Part shown: piece after piece, positions 12,606 to 63,607 of the stretch
Position numbering within the stretch: the first letter of the stretch is position 1
Layout of the letters: each line of letters starts with the position of its first letter
Assembly: GCF_040938485.1 (NCBI RefSeq)
Contig: NW_027270911.1
Location: 682,001 to 746,000 of the forward strand
Origin: Diadema antillarum
Lineage: Eukaryota
Direction of reading: 5' to 3'
DNA length: 64,000 bases
Notes under the pieces: generated by a model
The model's database searches: none
What the model saw: only the letters and a program-made list of their open reading frames with translations
Told to the model about the DNA's origin: nothing
Position numbers and translations under genes: made by a program

Positions 12606-15234
12606 ATGTCAAGTTTTTCAACGAAGCAGTTGCCGAGGCCCAGCAGCGCAGGTAGCAATCCGCTGACCAGGTCGCTGCCGTCCTCATCTCCGGGAGCGGC
12701 CGGGGCGACATCGGCTGGCAGGGTGCTCCAGTACCGGGCACTTCACACGGGGGATCGCTCACTGAAAAAGACGGCTCAAGTTTCGCCCCTTCAGATGAGT
12801 ACTCCCAACACAAGAACCGACACAGCATCGTTTAAGACTCACAAGTTCAAAGCAAGGCACAGTCAGTGGACCCCTATTTTGCATAAGCCATCAAATGAGC
12901 AGGTAATCTCATTCTCAGGCTCGAGGCTGTTTCTTACTGTAGAGTCTACTCGGCTTACTTACAGTAACTGGTAACTGTTAGTGGTAACACTAAAAGTAGT
13001 TGTGGGTAACAGTAGAGTCAATAGTAACAGTTTTATAAGTAGGTCTAACGTTAATGATTATGATTAAGTTAGATCAAGTCACATCTGCTTTTGAAGATTT
13101 AATGAATTTAGTCACCGATCGTAGAAACCCTACCTAGTTGACCGAAAGATCGGTCTGTATCTGGTTGTGGGGGATATGCTCTGCGGAGACTGCGTCTGGC
13201 TTCACAGATGTCTCTGCTCTGGAGGAGAGCGATAACGTCCAAAAAAAATAAAAGACTCCTCCAGACAGACAGATTTTTCTGTCTATTCTAGTAGTATTGA
13301 GAAATCCCAGCACGGGGCGCTGTTTTTGGTTGCTGGTGTGGTTATTCTAGTAGGTGTCTGAAGTAGTTTCAATATGGTGTTGACTTCTGAGCTTTTTAGC
13401 TTTAACGTTTCGACCACTGCCACCTTCACTCACAGAGTCAAAAAGGATGCATTAGTGCCATTACGTTAACATTTAAATGACGCCTTGGATTTCTAGATTC
13501 TACATTCTAGCTACATTGTCATTATGTTATGTCAGATCTTGAAATGATTGTTTGTCAAATCTTAGATAAGCAAAACCATTATTTTCTTTATGTATTTCTT
13601 TCTTACCTTCGATCTCTCCAGCTGTACCTAGAAAGAAGAGATCTGGTTGCTCATTGGGTAAGTAGACTACAAATGTAAATGGTGGTGCAGGGTGTTGCAG
13701 AGATATTGCAGCCAATGTCCTATTCAAAACAAGGCAGAAAGAGCCCCTTTTCTTAGAGGGGAGGGGGCTAGGGCTTGTTTTTTTGTGATTTTAGTGATCA
13801 TGTTTTTACCATGAAATGTTCAATCAAATCAACTACACCATGTTTTTACCATGAAATGTTCAATCAAATCAACTCAGAATTTTTGTTGTAAATTTGTTGT
13901 CAATTTTGTTTGTAGATTTTCAAAATGTTTAACCTAGCAATTAAATATAATTTTGTCAGCAACTTACAGGAAATAATTCGTCACAGGAGCGTAGAATTGT
14001 GATATGCTCGACATGTTCTTTATATGTCGCTACTCCCATAGATGCGAGTTTGAGAAGTATATCAATTGGTTTTCATGCTTTACAAGGATGTGACCAAGCC
14101 GTTTCAGCAAATTGATATTTCAAGCACAATTTGTGGCATTTGGCTAATTTTGTTTGAATTGTGTAATCACAGATTACTATGTTTATTATGTTTTTGTAGT
14201 ATGTCATGATCAAAAAGAAATTTTGTGAAATGAGAAAGGTTATAGCTTGTTTTATCTTTCTCAGGTGCTTTCCAAAACTATATTACAGGATTGTAGACAA
14301 ATGGCTAGCTGCTGAGCATTTGTGTACAGGATATCTCCACAGAAATAAGGCTTCCCTCTTTCTGCTCACTGTTATGTGATTTACACTAAAATCTTTCTCT
14401 TGTGCCATTGTTTCAGTGGTTCAATATGGCAAAAGAAGAAAAAAAAATGCCCTCCTACCTCTGTCTTACCACACCCCTACCCTATAGGCATGATACTCAA
14501 TTAATGCCATTTTCCACTCACCTGCCCAGTTTGACCTGTGGACAGACTCCCAGCGCAAGCGCTTTCTCCAGTTCCTGCTGGTGCACTGCCAGCGCAGCCA
14601 GCTGCTCTTCCTCCAGCATTTCTTCGACAGCGCCATCCCGCTCACCCACGTGGACTTCACCAAGATGCTGCCCCGCTTCCTCTGCCTCCACATCTTCTCC
14701 TTCCTGGACCCCCGCAGCCTGAGCCGGGCGGCGACGGTGTGCTGGCACTGGAAGTTCTTCACAGAGCAGGTGCGTTGTCGCCATGGGATTATGATGTCAG
14801 GGTGGGGTGTGTGGTACAAGTGGTATTCTTGTTGTTTGAAGATTTGTGGTGAGTCAGACCTAAAGTTCAAAACATATGAGTCCTCAGTCAAAAGATTTCT
14901 TGCTGTTGTTTTAATAGCAAAATGAAGTCATAAAGACTGCTTATAGCATATGAGTAGGAAGTTTGAATGATACTTGAATTTTCTCCTGCCAACTCTATCT
15001 GTTTGCTTTCTCTTTATACTTCATATTTTGGTAGATGTGTAGGCATGTTAGAAGAGCATGCCATCACAGTGATTATTATGATATTGTTGATACACAAAGT
15101 GTCACTTCTTTTCTCCGATGAAATCATAGTACACTAAACTAGCATGACAGCTTATGGGCTAAAAATGAGAGGAGGTGATCCCTACTGTATGGCTACTGTT
15201 CCATAACTTCACTTCCTTCCCACACCTTAAACCT

Positions 15235-15267
<33 letters not shown>

Positions 15268-18200
15268 CAGGATGAGCTCTGGATGCCCAAGTGCCTGAGA
15301 CACGGTTGGCTCCTCCCCTACGTGCCCAGGGAGAATGAGTACGGCTCCTGGAAGAAGCACTACATCCGATGTTTCCGGTCCATGGATGTCAGCCAGCCCA
15401 ATGAAAAGGTAGGAATTCCTTGTTGCTATTTCTTGGCCTAGTTCCAGTGATCCAACAGGAATCAAGAGAGCTGTTTAATTGTGTGTCTTGTTATAGAAAA
15501 ATACATCAGAAATCATGATACGTCTTATCTAATTCAACAGTTGCAATGAGAATGGTGCTGCTGAAAATACTCGTATAGTAATGATGAAGATATTCATTTT
15601 CATAATTATGACAGTATTGATGATGATGATATTCACATCAGATGCATCAGCATGTCTCATTTTATTTAAGGTGATGATAGTGTTTATGAAGAGGTTGATT
15701 TTAATTATGATAATGATACTTATGATGACTTTGATTGTGATGATGATGATGATGATGGTGGTGGTATTGGTGGTGGTGATGATGCTGAGTAAGAAAAAGG
15801 GGAGGGAGGAGAGAGGAATAATTTTTCTGGTGTGATTCTCTTTCACCACACATGCTGATCACAAGTCTTGTACAAAATGATTTAGAATACTTGTCATAAG
15901 ACTCCCGAAACACCAATCAGTCATTACCCGTCTATTGTCTGTAATCTTTCTTCTGTTCTTACTCAATCCTCCTCTCAGTCTGAAAGGTATTGCAAACTTG
16001 GTGACGGCTCCACTCTCGCTGATAAGGAATATCAGAGGAAACTCAAGGCCGGTAGAATCAAGGAACCGGCCCTCAATCCACGTAAGTAATCTTTAAGCCT
16101 TGTTATAACATTACATCATGTTTCCTCTCTTCCTAAAAATGGTAACAAGATCATTATGCATTGATCGTTTCAAATCGAATACAGAATTGATATTGTACAT
16201 GTACATCAGTGATACATGATAATTCCTGATCGATATTCTTCCATGTAACCCGTAATATTGTCCTTAAAAATAAAAAGTCCTTATGTGCTTGAATAATCAC
16301 GAGAACACATTTTACGTTAGTATTTGACTTTTTTACTTGTAAATTTGTGTTTTTGCAAGCCATGAATTATTGCAATAATTATGTAATTGTTTTGTTTCCT
16401 TTTTTGTTTTGATTGAGTATGTCAATTGATGTTTGTTCATATTATTGTTCTCTGTGAACATTTTCACAAAGCATAAAGTAGCGGGGATAAAGTTTAGACA
16501 GAGCAGTAAAGCACTACTGTCCACCATATATGTGACCCGCTACAACAAAATGATCCTAAAGTCGGGCGAGGTCGATTATTTGAAAATTGCATGATATAAT
16601 CCCCTAATCTTTCTGCTTTAAATTGATATATAACACATTTTATAAAAATACTCGGCTGCGGAGATATCGATGTTTAAAAGAGAACATGTCGAGACGTCTG
16701 GAAAAGCACTGTTTCGAGAAAAGCACCCTAAAAGTCTTCCTTTCGACGCAATCACGATCAAGAGACACGCAATTCAGTTTTCACATCTGGACAATAGAAG
16801 GTAAGCCCTAGCAACCCCCGAAGAGTTCATTCAAGCACATCAGTGTCGGCGGTCTCCTCACCAACCAATCAGTGACCAGGATGTGAGAAGCGGCTGAACA
16901 TAGCACACCCCGCCCGCACGTGCACCAGTCAACTGGGCAGTGTGCGAGCTTCACGCTTCGGTTAGCAGCAAGCAGCAAACTGACCAATGAGATCACTCTG
17001 GTCGTTGTTAGGGGCGGAACCTATCTGTGGCGCTCAATCCAAATTTTCGATCCAGTTTCTGCTTCGTTGAAACGCCAAAAACATGGCTCAGAAAAACGCT
17101 ATTTTTTTATCTTTCCTTTGATCATTTTGCTTCAAAATTTCGACAGATGATAGAAGACATGTTAGACTCCAATAATATATCAAAATCAGAAAATATTAAG
17201 TTTTGACCAATTTTGATGCTCTGACTTCAAACTTGATTTTCACGGCTTCGACAGTGCGCGACTTTAGGACCTTTTTGTTGTAGCGGGTCACATATTATTT
17301 GAAGGTTCTGCATTTTCTCAGAATCTGCTTGTGTTACAAGTTGATGAGATTGATTTCTAGGAGGCTGTTAAAATAAAATCCAATTTAGATTAATAACTGT
17401 ATGCATTGCTCTGCAAACATCAGATCCTTATGACGAGAGGGGACCGTGGCTGGACCCAGACCCCCGTCCCCAGGACACGGAGAAGGCATTCCGGGGCATG
17501 ACGGACACGGCCAGCCCAAACTTTGGCTTCCCGCTACCCAAGGTCCACCAGAGGTCCTGGACGGAGCCGGCCCGCAAGTTTGAGTATGGCCTGGAGTCCA
17601 GTGGGCGCAAGAAGCAGCACCGCGTCGCACAGGTGAGAGATTGTCTGTTACTCCACTAAACAGAATCTGAGAGTACGACTGTAGGTCTGTTGTGATGTTA
17701 AGACTGTGTCCATTGATGATGTGAGTATAGTATATACCTTTTTTTTTTACCTCAGTGATTAATGATTCAAAGTTGTGTTGTGGAATTGTTTAAAAAGGAA
17801 AAGGAAAATGAGAGGAAAGAGAGAGGAATTTTACCATTCAAAGGAGAAGACTTAAATTGACACTGTATTTAAATNNNNNNNNNNNNNNNNNNNNNNNNNN
17901 NNNNNNNNNNNNNNNNNNNNNNNNNNNNNNNNNNNNNNNNNNNNNNNNNNNNNNNNNNNNNNNNNNNNNNNNNNNNNNNNNNNNNNNNNNNNNNNNNNNN
18001 NNNNNNNNNNNNNNNGTTTGTTTTGTTTAACTTTTACAGACTATACATACAGTGCACTCCTGTTACAACGAACACGGTTATAATGAAATTTCGTTATAAC
18101 GAAGTAAATCTTGTGGTCCCAAAATTATCACCATTAAAGTCTATGGTGCAAAATTCGCTTATAACGAACACGGTTACAGCAAAATTTCCGTTATAACGAA

Positions 18201-54254: not shown

Positions 54255-57200
54255 ATGGGAACGTTCGTAGTTTCCGTCAAATTAGTAAGCGGGAACCTCT
54301 GTGGGCAAAGAAACGTAAGCTCTGCTCGTTCAATGCTGAATGTTGTGGTCGATCCCTCGCAAAGTGGCAGCTGCCTACGGAATGATGTTGCTCGTCTGTC
54401 GGGCCAGTCTCCCGGTGATATTCGACTAATTTTCGCTGGAAGAGAGATATGCGATGACCATTCAATCAAGGTTTGCATGCGTCCATACTATAATTCTCTC
54501 CAAGTGAGATCCTTTCATGCGAATTTATGCCATCATTGATAAAGATTTCAATGGAAAAAAAAAAAACCACAGTAGAACTATTACAACTGTAGAGTGTCTA
54601 CCTCCTTCTTGCTAAAAGCTTGGCCTTGCTAGTTCATATTTAACACTACAGACTAAGTACAGTCATACTCTATATACTATAGATCTAGTTAATTAAATGA
54701 TACACTCTAAAAAATTGTTTTTGTTTTGTGAAGTGCATTTATTGTCACAAATTCAAGTCAAGAAAGTTTAATCACCTGATCATGACATGTTGCTTTGATT
54801 CCTTTCCGCTATAAAAAAAGGACCTGGAACTAGCGGAGCACACAGTCATCCATGCAGTGCCAGCCATCAGCAGAGACAATTCTGAAGAAGCAGGCAGACC
54901 TGGTCTTGAAGCACATTCTGGTGTTGAGAGGTCTCTAGTAAATTCCACAGGAGTGGAAGTTGAAGGTTGGTTGTAATAGTCTTGTATTTATAGATTACTT
55001 ACAATAAGTCATTACCGATCTATCGACTTGTTATGTTTATCATGATTTTATTGCACATATCATTGTCATGTAATGTATGCTAGTATCATTTTATTTTTGT
55101 TCCTTACTTAATGGTTAGTGTGAATTGCCCGGGTGTGAATAGTAGATCTCATGGCATACAAATTGTATGTATACAATTGTGAACAAGTTAGTCCATAAAT
55201 CATTTGTATAAAGTTGTGTAATTTGTGCTGCAGTATTAGGGTAGCAATATTGTACTTATGAAGGAGAGAGAGAGAGAGAGCTCAGTCAAATTGCTGCATG
55301 TTTCCGTTTTAATTATTTTTATTTTGGTTATATCCATTCTTTATTTCCTACTCTCTCTCCCTCCGTTTATGGGTCTCCCTCTTTTTACTGACTCTTTCTC
55401 TCTCCCTTTCTCGATCTTGATCTCTCTGAGACTGTCATGAGATTATCATCTCTCTCCATCTTTTGTCATGTTAGGTAATGGAACTGAAGACAGCATGCAA
55501 GGATGGAAGTCCTGCTTCCACACGTTCTGCAAGAATCACTGTCGGTCGGTCCAGCGAGGAAGGTTGAGAGTGAGGTGCAATCGATGCAAAGATGATGCCT
55601 TCCTTGTGACCCAGGTGAGGCTGTCCATCTCTTCCTTCAATCCACTACTTTCAAATCCAAACTGTGAAAGTCCTCATGCCACATGTGACTGTGCATTACA
55701 AAACCAACAAAAAGTTGCACACACTGATTTTATGTCAGGACTCGAAATAGACGAGATGGGTCAACCTTGTCAATCTAGAGTTTTTCATATTTTCAAAAAA
55801 AGAAAGACTTCATCTACATCATGGTCAAGTTTTGGATCATGAAACGAATGGGAAATTGTGTTTTTAGTAGTTTTACTAGAACACATATTTTGTAGAGAAG
55901 TGTGATTAGATGTGCCTTCTAGAGTTCCCTTTTCATTTCTTAAAAATCCTTTACACACTCTTCAATTTAAACTCTAATAACTCTTGAAAGGGTGATGCTA
56001 CGTACTGCTTTGAAAGTTGTAAGTACAGTAGTCATGGATAGATTGTGTTAATAGAGCAGGATCAATTTCAGCTTAATCTGATAATCCCTTCATTGTTTAT
56101 ACTGCAGAGTTTCACATCCTGTTATTTGTTCCATTCATTGCACCACTGGCACTGCTTGGAAAGATTAAGTGCTTGAGTAGAACCTGTACTTCAGAGCCTC
56201 TTTTTCTCAGTTTACACTTTTCAGAGTGTGTGCTTTCTTTCCAATATCAGGACAGGTTCGGAGAGTTTATTTGACTTGAGTTATACACTATTTTAAAGCT
56301 TAGAGTGTGCTCTTTCAGGATCTGTCCTTTACTAAAAATCCATGTCTGGCAACTTTTCGTTGGTTTGGTGGTGTAGGGTCACATATAGTTTCTAAACAGT
56401 GACCATAGATCAAAGGTGGAAGTGAGACAACAGGCCAGTGCATCCACCAGAAGTGATATACCAAAGTTGCTCACATACATCTCGATTGTTTTCATTTTAT
56501 TAGATAGTGTATGTGTGTGTATGTATGTGTGTGTATGGGTGTGTATGTGTTTACGTGTGACACACAAGCAAACACGCAATTGTCAAGGGTGATATGCATT
56601 ACATACAATTATGCTGTTACAGGGGCCGTGCAACCGGGGGCAGGGGGCTGGGTGCAACACTTTTGGCTCTTCGGGGGAAAAAGAAAAAGAAAAACTCTAA
56701 AAGAAAAAAAAAAATCACCAAACCTTTGACCTTCTCAAGCTTCCATTCGGAGATTGTTCTTGTCAAAGCAGGGAAACCATTGACCCTTGACTACCCCCCC
56801 CCCCACACACACACAAACATTAAAAAACATTCTGTGGCCCCTCTGTTGTCAGTTGTGTGTGTATAAAACATGTCTGCATTGTTATTTTTTTGTGTGTATG
56901 TCATGTGTTCCCTTTAACTAGGATCCCAGCTGTTGGGAAGATGTTCTACTTCCAGGGAGAATATCGGGAAGCTGTCACGTACTCGGCTGTGGAGGTCACA
57001 AAGCTGTAAGATCACCTTCTCTATTCTTTTCCATTTAATCGATAAAATACACCATATCAAAGTCAGTACCGGTACTTACTATGATTATGTTTTGAAAACA
57101 TGAGTGTAGTCTTGGGCTGTTGCATTTTTAAGGAATTTTTGTTTTGTAATCTCATTACTCAATTACTGGTATTAATTTTCTGTGTGAATTTCCCAGTATA

Positions 57201-60200
57201 CAAGTGTGAAAGTTCTCTTTTCAGGAGTTCTACTTTAAGTGTGGTGGCCATTCAGCATCCATCCAGGATAACATCAGTCCACTGCCCCTTGTGAGAAGCA
57301 ACACTAGGAGAGCCATCTGCATCACTTGTGAGGATGTTTTGTGAGTATCGCTTTTGGTAGAGTATGGTACTTAAAGGTGCATAGTCCCGGTAGTGCAGAG
57401 GGCGCTGTTGATGATACTTCCAATCATCGTTAGCATTGATACGAAGATTACCGAAGTTGAGCTGTCATCAAGAGTAAAGTGCGTAGGTGTTGCTAAGTTA
57501 TGTTGCCTTCGTTGTTTTCTCTGCGCATCGCGCAGTCTGTAGTACTGCCAGGGTGCGTGCATATGTGTTTCTTATTATGACATCACAAAAGAAGTTTGCT
57601 AAAGCTGTCATCCCCGTCAGCGGAATCATGAGCCAAACTGTGATCGGACCACAGTGGATCCGACTTCTTCAGACTAGGGGAAGTGGGCCACAGCGTAAGC
57701 GCTAAAGAGGAGTCGATAGCGTAGGTCTCTATAGGAAACTTGCACCGTGCGCTCGCATACGCATTTGACTAAACCACCAGGACCATGTGCCTTTAAAGCC
57801 GGTCTGCACTGGCCATTATTTTGATGCCAGAACTTTTTGTAAAGAGCGCCATCTATCAAAACTTCCAGTGGCCGGGTTACATCCATAGAACTCTAGTCAG
57901 AACTCTAGTTCTGTGGTTACATCGTTTGTGGCTGATCGCCGCCTGCATGCCAGTCAGCGCACGATCTCACAGCAGCTGTGCGCAGAGCCGAGAGAACACA
58001 CACAAGCAGTGCATAATATGGTGGGGTACCGAGAGCCCAGCCCCGCCCGCCCGGCGCGTCCTCGATCTTTCGGCCGATCGCGAGGGAACGGGTTACTTGT
58101 CGCGAGAGAGATCCGCGACAATCCACTCACTCAACCAAATGACCTACTCGCTATACACCATACCAGCGCAGCGAGCAGAAAAACATCGCTGGGCGGTGAA
58201 TTAGTGTAATGTGGCCGTCGGTTTCTTCGTCGGGCCAGCTGATTGAGATATCTTCATGATGTGCAGTAAAATATTCCTTCAAATTTCATGCTCTTTATTG
58301 AGTTTTCATGAAGTCCAACACGATGAGTGATGAAAGCTCCAGATGCATTTACGAATATCTCTCACACATAAATCTTTGCTACTACTAACAGTTAGACGGT
58401 AAGAGTTATAGATCTAAACGTTAGTAGTAATAGTACTACTACTAGGCCTAGTAGTACCAGAACAAATGTACATGCGGTTCCTATATCTATGTGCTGTCCC
58501 CCTGCCCTAAATATTATTATCACACATGTGAGAAATGACACCAAGCTAATATATCTCGAGATTGCAATTGGGAAACAGATAACATATCGTGAATTGATCA
58601 TGATTTCCCTTCCTAGAAATTTCATTCGACAATTTGTTGAGGCTAGATTAGTGAGGAACAATAACCTTAAATGCTAAAATGAAAACGTTCATACTGATTG
58701 ATAGTGATACTGATAATTAAATATGGCCCGTTATGGATGCGTCTAACGCTACACCGTACACGTTCACTAATTGACTTAATCAGGCCTAGGTCTAGGTCTA
58801 GTCATTAAGTCATCATAGACACTTCTTGTCGTAAGTTGGACGTCAGTATTTATTGTAATAATCACTGAAAAAAATGTGAATAAGGTTGTTTTAAATTTTG
58901 TCATCGTTCATCGCGACGTTATGAAGATCAACGGCAACGCAGCGGTAATTCGAGTAACGGTAACGTTAGTCGTTACCTGGATTTGGAAGGTTATAAATTC
59001 AGCATTCAGTGAATGTCATTTGCAACTGAATAAAAAGTAGGTACAATTGTATATCATACAAGTTGAGTTTCATCCACCTTGGCTTATCAGATGCTTCTGA
59101 CTCAGTCTGAGTGCACGTGGAAACTTTCACGACGGGTTGATCCCGCAATCCTGACACACAGCTTCACTGTAGGCTCGACACCAGTGCTGATGGCAAGATG
59201 CCCAGTGGTGGACATCCAGCAGCTAGCAGATGACCAGCAAAGTCATCCTGCGTTGAATGGCTTGATGGGCTGTCAAGGGCAACGTTTATCTTGTTCATTT
59301 CTTGCCGATAAACAGCTCGCATTTCCTCCCACTGGATCCAGCATTTACCAAGTCGTATCTGCGACATACCGGTACATTGTAATCGCAGATTGAACTTCGA
59401 CACAACGATCAGAATAAACGATCTGAGTGTCGAAGTGTTTGAAAGCACCGAACATACATGCAGATCTATCGCGCATCGCGAAGTGATAAAACACCATTTA
59501 GTGCCAACCTATAATGGTATCGATATCTAGATATTTGTGGTACGTGAATGTATGCAATGGACTGCGCAAGATCATGCGGGAGCGAAGCGAGCCGCTGCTA
59601 GGCTATCCCCTACGGGAACCTGGTGATCTGTGTGTTAAGTCTATGGGAATATCAGAATTCAGTATGGAACGGGTTAATTTTGATGCACGCCGCTAGGCAT
59701 TATGGGAGAAATGCTGGGCACCACAGAGAAAAATGAGCCTTATGATGGCGCTAGACATGTTTCTTACCAATGCAGACCCACTTTAAAGTATAATGAAAGG
59801 CTGCAACCCCCACCCCTTATCACTCTTAGAAAAGTGAATACAGAAATTTAAAAGAAAAATGGCAAACCTGAGAAAACCCGTGAGAGTTACGGCCCAAGAT
59901 TCTTCCATACGGAAAGGGGTGGGAGCTTTGCTCCTTGAAGTGGCCACAATTGAACACAAAACAGCACCCTCCCATTGCAGCTGCATCCTGAAGTGTATTA
60001 TCAAATTATTTGTTTAGTTGTGTCTTTGCATTTTTGCTTTTCATTCATTGCTGATTTCCTATGTAATTTTTTTTTTTTAAACTGTGTATCCCTGTCCTTC
60101 TTATTCATTCTTCCCTTCCCCCAAAGGAACCCAGTGCTGGTCTTTCCCTGTGCAGCATCCCACACCATGTGTCTGGAGTGCTTCAGCCAGTACTGTCGGC

Positions 60201-63200
60201 TTGGCCTCGATGAGAGGAGGTTCATCCACCACTCCGAGGTTGGATACACCCTGCCATGCCCAGGTGAGTGATGAGATGCTGGCAAGATCCTTCCACCCCT
60301 GGTGGAGTGACATTTCCAAGAGAGTTAATCTTTATTTTCTTTAATCAAAAAGCTACAATTCCTTATGTTTTTGTGAGTTCAGCTGCTGTTGCACAATGAA
60401 AATCAAGATTTACAAGCATGGTAACTCATACAGCACAAACTTTTTCAAAATGTTACACTGAAAAGCTGAATAGGGAAGTCTGCTGTAAACTAAGTAGGCC
60501 TATTAAGGAAGGGGAGTTAGGAAGAAATGTTACTCTGCTTTGGTGCCATCCACAAGAAAAAGATTGCAATAAATGTTTCCTTGTTTTTAATTACAGCCGG
60601 TTGCATGGACTCTTTCATATCAGATGCTCATCATTTTCTTGTGCTGGGAAAAGAACAGGTTGGTAGCAGAAGTTTTCTATGCTATTTTTGCCATCATCAT
60701 CTGCATTATACACATCATCATTGTTATTGTTATTATAATTATTATTATTATTATCATCATCATCATCATCATCATCTTTGTAAATAGGTATTATTATTTT
60801 GTATACATGTATGTATATATATATATATATGTATCTTTCATTAATTTGTTTATTCATTTCATCATTTATTTCTTTATTTTAGTTGTTGGGAGGGGAGGAG
60901 GCTGTTGACTGCTTCAGCCTTTAAGCTGAAAGAAAAAATCCACTCCTTGTGAAAGTTGACCACAAAAGGAAGAGTCCAAGAACAGAACAGAACAGAACAG
61001 AACAGAACAGAACAGAACAAGTTTCATAAACATCAGACAAAACATGATGAAAGTTGTGGAAGTTGAATAGGTTGCCACAAAATAATGATACTGGTTGGGG
61101 TCGAATGGTATATTTGTAATAGACAATGTGATGATGTCATTACTTCACAACTGTAACTAACTTTCCCTACCAACTTTCATATATGTACACTGAAAATCTT
61201 TCTCTTCCAGTATGCAAGATACAAACGCTTTGGAGCCGAAGAGTACCTTCTGCAGGAGGGTGGGGTGCTCTGCCCATCCCCTGGGTGTGGGGCTGGCATC
61301 TTGCCAGACTTGGATGACAGGAGGGTGGTGTGCCAACAAGGAGGTGGCCTCGGATGTGGGGTAGGAACAATCCTTTCGAGTTGCAGGCCCTTGTGAAGCC
61401 CTATAGAGTCACCTCGTTCATGTACATTTGTACATTAATTAATTTTTTCCATACAAATGATTGTATGCAAAGTTCAAGTACGCTATCAAAGTTGTTACAG
61501 GTAAAAGTATCCCTTCTCGAATTTGAATAGCAATTTCAGTTGATGGACATTTATTTTGAACAAAGTGGTATACAACTCATTGTAATGAAATTGCTACACA
61601 AATAACATTTTTTATCGCAGTCATATCCAAAATGCATAGCAAATTGCTATGCGATACCAAGAAAATTATTCCCTGTTGTATTATACTACTGCCAAATTCA
61701 TACAAACTATGGTACGTACTTCACAAGCTTTGGCATACATCTGTCTTTTTACCACAGTTTATCTTCTGCCGTGAATGTCACAATGCTTACCACGATGGAG
61801 AGTGCAATCGGCCAGGGGCACCACAGGAAGTCATGGGGCGACCAGGGTCAGAGGTCAACCCAGAGAGGGAGAGGCAGGTGAGATGGGAACGGGAGGAGAG
61901 CGAACGGACCATTGAGCAGACCAGCAAGCCATGCCCAAAGTGTAAGGTGCCTGTGGAACGGAATGGTGAGTTCTAGCTCTGGTAGCTGCTATGTGCCTCA
62001 ATGAAAGCACTGAATAGCATTTATATCATGCAATGAATCTGGACACATTATTGAGACAATTATTTTGCAAGTACATACAAGTGTAGTTAGATTAGAAAGA
62101 TACTTCAAGTTTCATTTTTCAAAGAGCAAAGCTGGCTAGCTCCCACTTTGTAGACGAAATATATATCACACAAGGCAGTGTTTCATTGTTTTATTCACTT
62201 TATCTTTTCGATCTTTTTTTTGTTTGTGTGTGTGTGTGTGTGAAAATAATCTTCAAAAGAACAGATATAATAACATTCTTGTTGGACCCATCACAGTTAT
62301 ACAGGCAAGGACCTGCAACATGATGGTTCTCAAGTACTGCCTGAAATGAATGTTGAATGTTCATAGTAGGGCATGTCTTGTAGTACCATTACCCTATTGG
62401 ACCCATATCCTTCTGTTCTCTTAAAGGGAAATAAAAGATGCAAAGGAATTTCACAAAGTTTCATTTCTTGCCATTAAAAGCATATATGCATCCTTTCCTT
62501 GAATTGTTTTGAAGGATTTGTTTGGACAGACATTATTCTTTATGCCTTTTGGAGAAGTAAGGCCAACGACTCTTCAATTCCATAGAAGTATGAAGTTTTG
62601 TTGATTTTTTTAAATAGTTGCATGATGTAGTACACTTGTGTTAATTGTTGTAGAATTTGCACTGAGAGAGGGCAGCTCATGGAATTGACTGACACTGTGC
62701 AAACTCTAAGTTTTTTGCATGGATTGCCCCATTTCCCACAAACTTTCAGCGAGTGTAACACTTGTCTTTCTCCATGCATTGAATCCACATGAGCAATTTG
62801 GGAAACTTTCCCTTTAAAGGGAAAGCAAACTCAAAGAGCAATGTGGATTGAGTGAAATCAGCAACATTACTAGAACACATCAGCGAAAGTTTGAAGAAAA
62901 TTGGACAATCAATGCAAAAGTTATGAATTTTTAAAGTTTTGGTGTTGGAACCGCTGGATGAGGAGAATACTAGAGGTTATGACGTGTTAGTGGACAACAA
63001 TATAAAGAAAATTCCACAAAAATTCATTTTTCATGAAAATTACTAATTCCATCAATTTGGTACTGACATATGTCAAGGGTAGCAATTATTCCCCCTGCTT
63101 TCTCAAAACGGTTAGTCAAGTGCTTTTTCATAATGGTAGAAAAGTGAATTTTCGTTGAATTTTCTTTATTTATTATTTTCTTTGTATTGTTGTCCACTCA

Positions 63201-63607
63201 TATGTCATAACCTCTAGTAGTCTCCTCATCCAGTGGTTCCAACACCAAAACTTTGAAAATTCATAACTTTTTGCATCAATTGTCCAATTTTCTTCAAACT
63301 TTCACTTATGTGTTCTACTAATGTTGCTGCTTTCACTCAATCCACATTGCTCTTTGGGTTTGCATTCCCTTTAATGGCCTTTTGTAAATAAAGTACCAGC
63401 AACCTTCTCTGAGGGCACCACATTACAGTAGATCTAATTGTTTCTCCTCCTTGCTTCACTGCACTCCATGATGTACTCCAAGGTGGCTGCATGCATATGA
63501 CGTGCAGCCGAGCCCAGTGCAAGTTTGAGTGGTGCTGGCTGTGCGGTATCCCATGGAACTCGGACTGTCTCCAGGACCACTGGTTCAGCACCGGGATGCT
63601 CGGATGA
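54255..63607 (+). CDS. PRKN: E3 ubiquitin-protein ligase parkin (Ubl-RING0-RING1-IBR-REP-RING2), about 460 aa
   Basis: Exons 54255-54470, 54821-54965, 55475-55614, 56922-57005, 57225-57340, 60127-60263, 60597-60658, 61211-61360, 61758-61965 and 63483-63607 total 1383 nt, all GT-AG. Motifs: Ubl [13 protein letters not shown]0 FCKNHC...GRLRVRC and [13 protein letters not shown]1 C..C...[33 protein letters not shown]2 KPCPKC...GGCMHMTC...EWCWLC...DHWF. The true start or first exon is uncertain (see findings). Confidence 0.95.
57375..57792. mobile_element. Kolobok-like non-autonomous element (TTAA TSD, AGG termini)
   Basis: TTAA|aggtgcatagtcc ... ggaccatgtgcct|TTAA. Confidence 0.7.
57797..59782. 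mobile_element. About 2-kb Kolobok-like element (TTAA TSD), no intact transposase seen
   Basis: TTAA|agccggtctgcactgg ... ccaatgcagacccact|TTAA (16-bp TIR, 3 mismatches); CpG-rich interior. Confidence 0.6.
60979..61019. repeat. (AGAAC)n pentanucleotide microsatellite
   Basis: About 8 units. Confidence 0.9.
62818..63370. mobile_element. Kolobok-like MITE with long (about 200 bp) inverted arms, TTAA TSD
   Basis: TTAA|agggaaagcaaactcaaagagcaatgtggattgagtgaaa... matches the reverse complement of ...tttcactcaatccacattgctctttgggtttgcattccct|TTAA; it lies in the last Parkin intron. Confidence 0.85.

Follow-up and report, generated by a model that had tools for sequence, protein, structure and literature searches.

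Leucine at the Arg305 position of sea urchin Parkin: an old and apparently convergent variant of the phospho-recognition switch

The pocket with which Parkin takes up phosphorylated ubiquitin (pUb) belongs to the textbook picture of mitophagy, a pathway hit by mutations in early-onset Parkinson's disease, and tends to be depicted as an unvarying Lys151/His302/Arg305 triad (residues are numbered here as in human Parkin). What, then, is to be made of a Parkin gene in which the arginine is a leucine? Such a gene lies in the stretch of 64 000 nucleotides of the sea urchin Diadema antillarum that was analysed here ('the window'; C23:682001-746000 of an assembly of 1.75 Gb in 2963 contigs), where positions 54255-63607 of the forward strand hold an intact Parkin (PRKN) gene of 10 exons, with an uninterrupted coding sequence of 1383 nt for 460 amino acids. 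An original prediction made from this DNA had noticed the leucine, had considered a recent substitution, a polymorphism or a consensus error as its possible source and had suggested that, together with a threonine at position 65, it might alter both PINK1-dependent inputs of the protein. As detailed below, the leucine is shared by every urchin sampled and belongs to a set of rare residues that recurs in heterobranch sea slugs, an association that seems best accounted for by a compensated rather than a weakened pocket.

Leu305 in sea urchin Parkins and its age

The assignment of the residue comes from the short exon that encodes it. Its 21-residue peptide could be matched over its full length to human and rat Parkin in a phmmer search of PDB, in which Parkin chains were the sole matches, and the CTT codon at 60638-60640 therefore stands opposite Arg305 and the first histidine of the peptide opposite His302. 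What had been predicted for the rest of the protein was confirmed by the gene model and the alignments: the equivalents of Lys151 (in FCKNHC), His302 and Tyr312 are kept, leaving a triad that is incomplete at Arg305; Trp403 of the REP element and the catalytic Cys431, His433 and Glu444 are all retained; and the Ser65 acceptor of the ubiquitin-like domain (Ubl) is replaced by threonine, encoded by ACA. The RING0 pocket for the phosphorylated Ubl (pUbl), which is Lys161/Arg163/Lys211 in human Parkin, reads Arg, Arg, Lys and retains its basic character. Human and rat Parkin (PDB 5C1Z, 4K95, 4ZYN and 5N2W) show the same order of Ubl, RING0, RING1, IBR, REP and RING2 at about 44% identity. Besides positions 65, 161 and 305, the window protein departs from human Parkin by Lys at Glu309 and Gln316, Gln at Leu266, Gly at Arg271, an insertion in the β1-β2 loop of the Ubl and a short linker, and its gene by a length of 9.4 kb. 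The pUb and pUbl sites were defined with the help of the Pediculus humanus Parkin-pUb complex (PDB 5CAW) and Bactrocera dorsalis Parkin (6DJW and 6DJX), both of which are matched by exons 7 and 9.

Could the leucine be a flaw of the assembly or a peculiarity of one animal? CTT is a single base away from CGT, and a minor allele would be compatible with the contig differences listed. Against this stands contig C279, on which the entire region occurs again in colinear order, with an intact Parkin gene (C279:812529-822811, 462 amino acids, same splice sites) that keeps Thr65, Lys151, His302, Leu305, Lys309 and Lys316, and in which the equivalent of exon 7 (G000:C279:819012-819073) has CTT again, beside a synonymous TCA>TCG change six codons before it. 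The two genes are separated by 14 synonymous and 8 non-synonymous substitutions and by a two-codon indel in the linker, with a synonymous divergence (dS) of 0.047 and a non-synonymous divergence (dN) of 0.0075; the resulting dN/dS of 0.16 means that Parkin is under purifying selection. Over residues 105-375 there are 9 synonymous differences and no non-synonymous one. Since both copies were assembled independently and both have CTT, the codon predates their 4.7% synonymous divergence. Noncoding identity between the two copies of the region is 86-97%. An F-box protein gene upstream of Parkin is also colinear in both (window 14400-15500 and C279:765708-766793) and the polyubiquitin locus is double as well (C614 and C271), so that the simplest account is an unpurged assembly in which both haplotypes of a very heterozygous animal have been kept; were the copies to stem from a recent duplication instead, the argument about CTT would be unchanged. 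The C279 model is 100% identical over 436 residues to the NCBI entry parkin-like [Diadema antillarum] (P0265), to which the window protein is 98.4% identical. In addition, contigs from four sequencing runs, half of them from the same species and half from a relative, span the bin 60510-60670, and among the differences listed none falls within 60105-61344, which lends the codon weak support. With Leu present in the NCBI protein of the species and in four other urchin species or transcripts too, it is nearly certain that the codon is neither an error in the consensus nor a variant private to one individual, whether a heterozygous polymorphism or a very recent substitution.

Comparison with orthologues pushes the change much further back. 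Echinoderms were missed by a broad profile search, whose matches came mainly from vertebrates and insects, and a single-exon search found only relatives of at most 51% identity; a search seeded with gastropod Parkin brought in echinoderms, and a profile of the two best together with the window exons led to four named urchin proteins. Exon pieces that were aligned with just one or two full-length sequences ended up dispersed, and these alignments were set aside in favour of three others. The resulting urchin set has six members: the two Diadema copies, a protein from a Logan transcript (P0227), Lytechinus variegatus (P0240), S. purpuratus (P0264) and L. pictus (P0266), the last being a partial model that reaches residue 309 and so lacks position 316. 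As far as each sequence reaches, Thr65, Leu305, Lys309 and Lys316 are common to 6/6, and the urchins also share Leu43, Arg235, Gln266, Cys or Gly271, Arg276 and Ser437, with His302, Lys151 and Tyr312 invariant. This is so even though identity to the Diadema Parkins is no more than 59-61% for P0227 and the camarodonts. The insertion in the Ubl is likewise found in P0240, P0264, P0266 and P0265; the Diadema proteins differ from those of camarodonts in having Gly instead of Cys at 271 and in having Arg at 161. Because P0227 derives from a transcript, the same configuration is evidently transcribed in another urchin.

In contrast, sea stars (Acanthaster, Patiria and Asterias) and the crinoid Antedon have Ser65, Arg305 and Gln316. 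This distribution dates the change to the echinoid stem, which is to say that, judging from these sequences, it arose after the split between urchins and sea stars and before that between Diadema and the camarodonts; it may be older than the echinoid stem, holothurians and brittle stars lying outside the sample. Leu305 is therefore not the recent event that had been suspected, and is best explained as a state that was ancestral for echinoid Parkin and has become fixed in it. On the echinoid phylogeny, the class has probably been without Arg305, and with Thr65, for more than 200 million years.

A residue set shared with heterobranch sea slugs

Leu305 has a counterpart in heterobranch gastropods, and it does not come alone. 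A scan for consensus residues common to the two groups that occur in <15% of all other sequences found 11 rare states shared by urchins and heterobranchs: V43L, S65T, N235R, L266Q, R271C, Q276R, R305L, E309K, Q316K, K412E and P437S. The heterobranchs scanned were Aplysia californica (P0185), Plakobranchus (P0184), Elysia crispata (P0186) and one Logan transcript, and a partial Elysia chlorotica sequence (P0223) shows Leu305, Lys309 and Lys316 as well. Leu305 is strictly kept in both clades, in 6/6 urchin and 5/5 heterobranch sequences. The number of shared states stands out against a median of 3 over 66 group pairs, the figures for true relatives being 8 (urchins and sea stars) and 14 (heterobranchs and caenogastropods). 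Nor are the sites scattered, since they cluster at the interface between Ubl and RING1 (Val43, Leu266 and Arg271) and at the pUb site (305, 309 and 316). Leu266 is known to stack on the Ile44 patch of the Ubl and Arg271 to lie adjacent to the Ubl, Val43 is the neighbour of Ile44, and residue 309 is one helical turn from 305, in the hinge between RING0 and RING1 (Kumar et al., PMC4609183).

Such a likeness might betray hidden paralogy or contamination, and this was ruled out on three counts. A maximum likelihood tree (IQ-TREE, LG+C20) places the urchins (support 100/100) within the echinoderms (92/85) and the heterobranchs within the gastropods, also with starred support; the approximately unbiased (AU) test rejects a joint clade of urchins and heterobranchs (difference in log likelihood 57, p 0.00012); and the overall identity between urchin and heterobranch Parkins is only 38-40%. 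Taken together, the separate placement, the rejection of a joint clade and the low identity argue for convergence, rather than paralogy or contamination, as the origin of the shared residues. The two stem branches are both long, 0.88 for echinoids and 1.11 for heterobranchs. The sea slug proteins keep differences of their own, with Arg at Lys211 and without the two-residue insertion in RING2 that is found in deuterostomes and sponges.

How unusual are these states among animals at large? Position 305 turns out to vary, taking up Arg, Lys, His, Cys, Ser, Tyr, Gln, Asn or Leu. Among 236 aligned Parkins, the commonest combinations with position 316 are Arg305 and Gln316 (124), Lys305 and Gln316 (42) and His305 and Gln316 (26). 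Insect and crustacean Parkins usually have a basic residue at 305 (Lys in Bactrocera (P0105 and P0108), other dipterans and crustaceans, Arg or His elsewhere, no Pediculus row being in the alignment). Among the non-basic states, Cys is found in caenogastropods and Patella, Ser in Littorina, Tyr in Mytilus and Oscarella pearsei, Gln or Asn in a few others, and Leu in the urchins, the heterobranchs and one arthropod-like sequence. Lys151 is itself replaced by Ser, Ala, Gly, Thr or Val in 30/128 Parkins, mostly from arthropods and usually together with Lys305. Judging from these alignments, the structural literature makes the basic triad out to be more general than it is.

The partner positions appear to move with residue 305. 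Lys316 accompanies 15/19 rows with a non-basic residue at 305, and only 16 rows carry Lys316 at all (229 rows were scored for both positions, on a tree of 231), while Thr65 is present in 10/10 Leu305 sequences. On the tree, Leu305 has 3 origins, Thr65 about 6, and Lys316 about 4 changes. Thr65 is also paired with Arg, Lys or His305 in Scleropages, aphids and a tick. Thus the part of the original prediction that paired the two inputs holds good only in the limited sense that positions 65 and 305 change together.

Three other sets of sequences are worth recording in their own right. P0129, from Scleropages formosus, is a vertebrate Parkin with Thr65 in the standard Arg305/Gln316 background. P0213 (ENA), on a long branch on the arthropod side of the tree, combines Thr65, Lys302, Leu305 and Gln316, a third independent Leu305 that is without Lys316. 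Finally, the Parkins of a phylloxera, an adelgid and an aphid (P0209, P0216 and P0231) have Thr65, Lys305 and Glu316, while Tyr replaces the otherwise invariant His302; like the set of urchins and sea slugs they also have Arg276 and mostly Lys309, which makes them a third lineage in which both phospho-related sites are altered.

Readings of the altered pocket

What does the leucine do to the switch? The reading towards which we lean is that selection has kept the pocket in a compensated form, to which pSer65-ubiquitin probably still binds. On the echinoid stem, the Ubl/phospho-ubiquitin switch would have been remodelled in concert, in the Ubl (S65T and V43L), on the surface of RING1 that holds it (L266Q, R271C/G and Q276R) and around the phosphate pocket (R305L, E309K and Q316K). 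Lys309 and Lys316, which follow at distances of one and three helical turns, would make good the charge lost at 305. The phosphate pocket ('Pocket 2') has been defined as Lys151/His302/Arg305/Gln316 (Kazlauskaite et al., PMC4552487), and since Gln316 is part of this definition, Lys316 appears well placed to replace the missing charge. A pocket made of Lys151, His302, Lys316/Lys309 and Tyr312 most likely still takes up pSer65-ubiquitin, and Thr65 would still be a PINK1 site.

Several published observations bear on this. R305A was found to have modest effects only on pUb-stimulated phosphorylation and activity (PMC4552487), and Parkin with this change was fully active once phosphorylated (PMC4609182). 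In a human deep mutational scan of 2026 (bioRxiv 10.64898/2026.02.09.704749), substitutions at R305 cause a minimal loss of mitophagy, with a median score of 0.96 against 0.80 for K151, and threonine is given as the sole tolerated substitution at residue 65. The polyubiquitin repeats of the D. antillarum genome are canonical and keep Ser65. Purifying selection, the strict conservation of Leu in both clades, the tolerance of the human residues and the canonical ubiquitin together favour a compensated, selected variant, so that the suggestion of altered PINK1-dependent inputs would stand as regards the change and not as regards a loss of strength. We infer from the same evidence that pUb binding and PINK1 phosphorylation of Thr65 persist. 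In the collection of papers searched there was no mention of a Thr65 Parkin and no discussion of urchin Parkin residues.

Some points nevertheless weigh against a compensated pocket. The role given to Lys309 and Lys316 comes from their co-occurrence with Leu305 and from the published definition of the pocket. Independent-pairs and sign tests gave p 0.25-0.5 (0.25 for Leu305, with its 3 origins), the independent events being too few for significance in formal tests, which is why the covariation of 305 with its partner positions is suggestive, not proven. Both Oscarella pearsei, with Tyr305, and the arthropod-like P0213, with Leu305, have Gln316. No RNA run of Diadema antillarum was found among the sequencing runs. 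PINK1 was not located in the genome with the probes used, a result that says nothing on its presence: a degenerate DNA pattern for the motif D-F-G-C-C-L-A-D had 0 matches, exact or with 1 mismatch, a 39-residue peptide of the human PINK1 activation segment also had 0, and the pattern D-F-G-C-C-[LF] had 50 matches against 12 for a control, none of them in a kinase context (the candidate C284:4094309-4094325 was rejected as PINK1, there being no kinase exons within ±10 kb). Lastly, R305A abolished the pull-down of pUb by rat R0RBR (PMC4609182).

This last result leads to the first alternative, in which the pUb input is truly weakened, Parkin binding pUb poorly, relying mainly on phosphorylation of Thr65 or on other means of recruitment and running an attenuated feed-forward loop. 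It would fit with the wild-type ligase activity of phosphorylated R305A Parkin (PMC4609182) and with the altered Ubl-binding surface (L266Q and R271C/G): L266K abolishes docking of the Ubl in rat Parkin, and a Ubl released in advance could lessen the need for pUb. Yet human R305 substitutions barely affect mitophagy in the scan cited above. In the urchins, moreover, His302, Lys151 and Tyr312 do not vary and two lysines have been gained beside the pocket, and a site under relaxed constraint should drift, which the leucine has done in neither clade. A weakened input is in our view unlikely, if worth keeping in mind.

Alternatively, position 305 might simply be permissive, Leu having been fixed by drift and the partner changes being coincidences on long stem branches. 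The variability of the position over animals, its tolerance in the human scan, the length of both stems and the lack of power of the independent-pairs tests all agree with such neutrality. It sits badly with a leucine that is kept without exception in two clades, each time with Thr65, Lys309 and Lys316, with a number of shared rare states that exceeds both the control median and the figure for urchins and sea stars, and with the non-random way in which these states cluster in the pUb pocket and where the Ubl meets RING1. Neutral tolerance thus looks distinctly improbable.

More adventurous is the idea that urchins and heterobranchs independently reached a second co-adapted PINK1-Parkin switch, in which a Ubl phosphorylated on threonine goes with a Leu305/Lys309/Lys316 pocket that is either tuned to phosphothreonine or in which the coupling of Ubl release to pUb is rewired. 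We hold it to be improbable. If it were true, positions 65 and 305 would be functionally linked, which is predicted by no current structural model of Parkin. In a related and very unlikely scenario, the specificity of the pocket would have been retuned to phosphothreonine or to another phosphorylated Ubl, such as Parkin's own pThr65-Ubl, in cis or in trans, or phosphorylated NEDD8. The constant presence of Thr65 with Leu305 over three independent origins would be in accord with this, as would a leucine that could contact the γ-methyl group of phosphothreonine, and two reports describe a competition of phosphorylated Ubls, both in cis and in trans, for pockets of Parkin (PMC11368401; bioRxiv 2023.11.21.568018). 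However, solved structures of Parkin put the pUbl in the RING0 pocket (K161/R163/K211), which is still basic here, the ubiquitin of the genome keeps Ser65, and Thr65 is also found with Arg, Lys or His305 in Scleropages, aphids and a tick.

Gene model, surroundings and significance

The ten exons of the gene (Table 1) all have AG/GT boundaries. The exon that carries the CTT codon is 62 nt long, with its acceptor AG at 60595-60596 and a donor GT, and its first codon is completed by the G of the preceding exon. Exon boundaries equivalent to those of human exons 4-9 presumably fall as in human PRKN, barring the fusion of exons 10 and 11. The full set of Parkin domains (Ubl, RING0, RING1, IBR and RING2) is present, P0265 carrying the precomputed Pfam families PF00240, PF17976, PF17978, PF01485, PF22191 and PF22605. 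In the IQ-TREE phylogeny the window protein falls among the Parkins of echinoderms, its own phylum, and its best BLASTP matches are echinoid Parkins. The gene is best explained as a functional and otherwise ordinary Parkin orthologue of a sea urchin.

Table 1. Exons of the Parkin gene in the window (forward strand) and codons at positions discussed in the text
Exon	Coordinates	Content	Codons at human positions	Support
1	54255..54470 (+)	Start codon, most of Ubl; echinoid-specific β1-β2 loop insertion	Leu at Val43, 54426-54428	In-frame open reading frame, donor GT
2	54821..54965 (+)	End of Ubl, linker	Thr (ACA) at Ser65, 54842-54844	AG/GT, alignment
3	55475..55614 (+)	Start of RING0	Lys151 equivalent (FCKNHC), 55531-55533; Arg at Lys161, 55561-55563; Arg163 equivalent, 55567-55569	
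4	56922..57005 (+)	RING0		Aligned with other Parkins
5	57225..57340 (+)	End of RING0, start of RING1	Lys211 equivalent, 57237-57239	
6	60127..60263 (+)	RING1, including the Ubl-binding helix	Gln at Leu266, 60188-60190; Gly at Arg271, 60203-60205; Arg at Gln276, 60218-60220	
7 (human exon 8)	60597..60658 (+)		His302 equivalent, 60629-60631; Leu (CTT) at Arg305, 60638-60640; Lys (AAA) at Glu309, 60650-60652	
8	61211..61360 (+)	RING1-IBR helix, IBR	Tyr312 equivalent, 61211-61213; Lys (AAA) at Gln316, 61223-61225	
9 (human exons 10 and 11 fused)	61758..61965 (+)	End of IBR, REP, start of RING2	Trp403 equivalent, 61884-61886	phmmer against PDB: Parkin, E 7e-15
10	63483..63607 (+)	Catalytic RING2, stop codon	Cys431 equivalent, 63488-63490; His433 equivalent, 63494-63496; Glu444 equivalent, 63527-63529	

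The N-terminus calls for a comment, as the NCBI model P0265 starts at an internal methionine (MLNVVVD...) and is without the first 26 residues (window 54255-54332). The upstream in-frame start in the window matches the N-termini of other urchins, MD[RQ]F[LM]ISV[KT]L, and restores the first β strand of the Ubl. The loop insertion that follows (window 54285-54340, residues 11-29) amounts to about 11-16 residues relative to sea stars, amphioxus and vertebrates and is poorly conserved, with one of the differences between the two copies, V11E, at its edge. Repeats of very high copy number occupy parts of the introns (62764-63407, 59544-59704 and 61476-61797), where the contig depths add up to 10^3 to 10^6 in each of the four runs; these stretches show many inverted joints, are common to Diadema antillarum and its relative and are probably similar to short interspersed elements (SINE) or miniature inverted-repeat transposable elements (MITE). 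About 40 kb upstream of Parkin and on the same strand, exons of the F-box protein gene are found at 14494-15438, with the motif LPRFLCLHIFSFLDPRSL... and then ELWMPKCLRHGW....

What is new here is a natural, convergent multi-residue variant of the phospho-recognition switch of Parkin, in a gene that is itself an ordinary orthologue. The finding does not indicate a broken pathway. A whole class of animals has long been without Arg305, with a threonine at the PINK1 site, and a distant clade of molluscs found the same multi-residue solution. This offers a natural, selected and covarying set of positions (43, 65, 266, 271, 276, 305, 309 and 316) with which the allosteric Ubl/pUb switch can be probed, and an evolutionary explanation for the dispensability of Arg305 in the human mutational scan. 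It also calls for caution, in that R305 variants should not be called damaging from structure alone.

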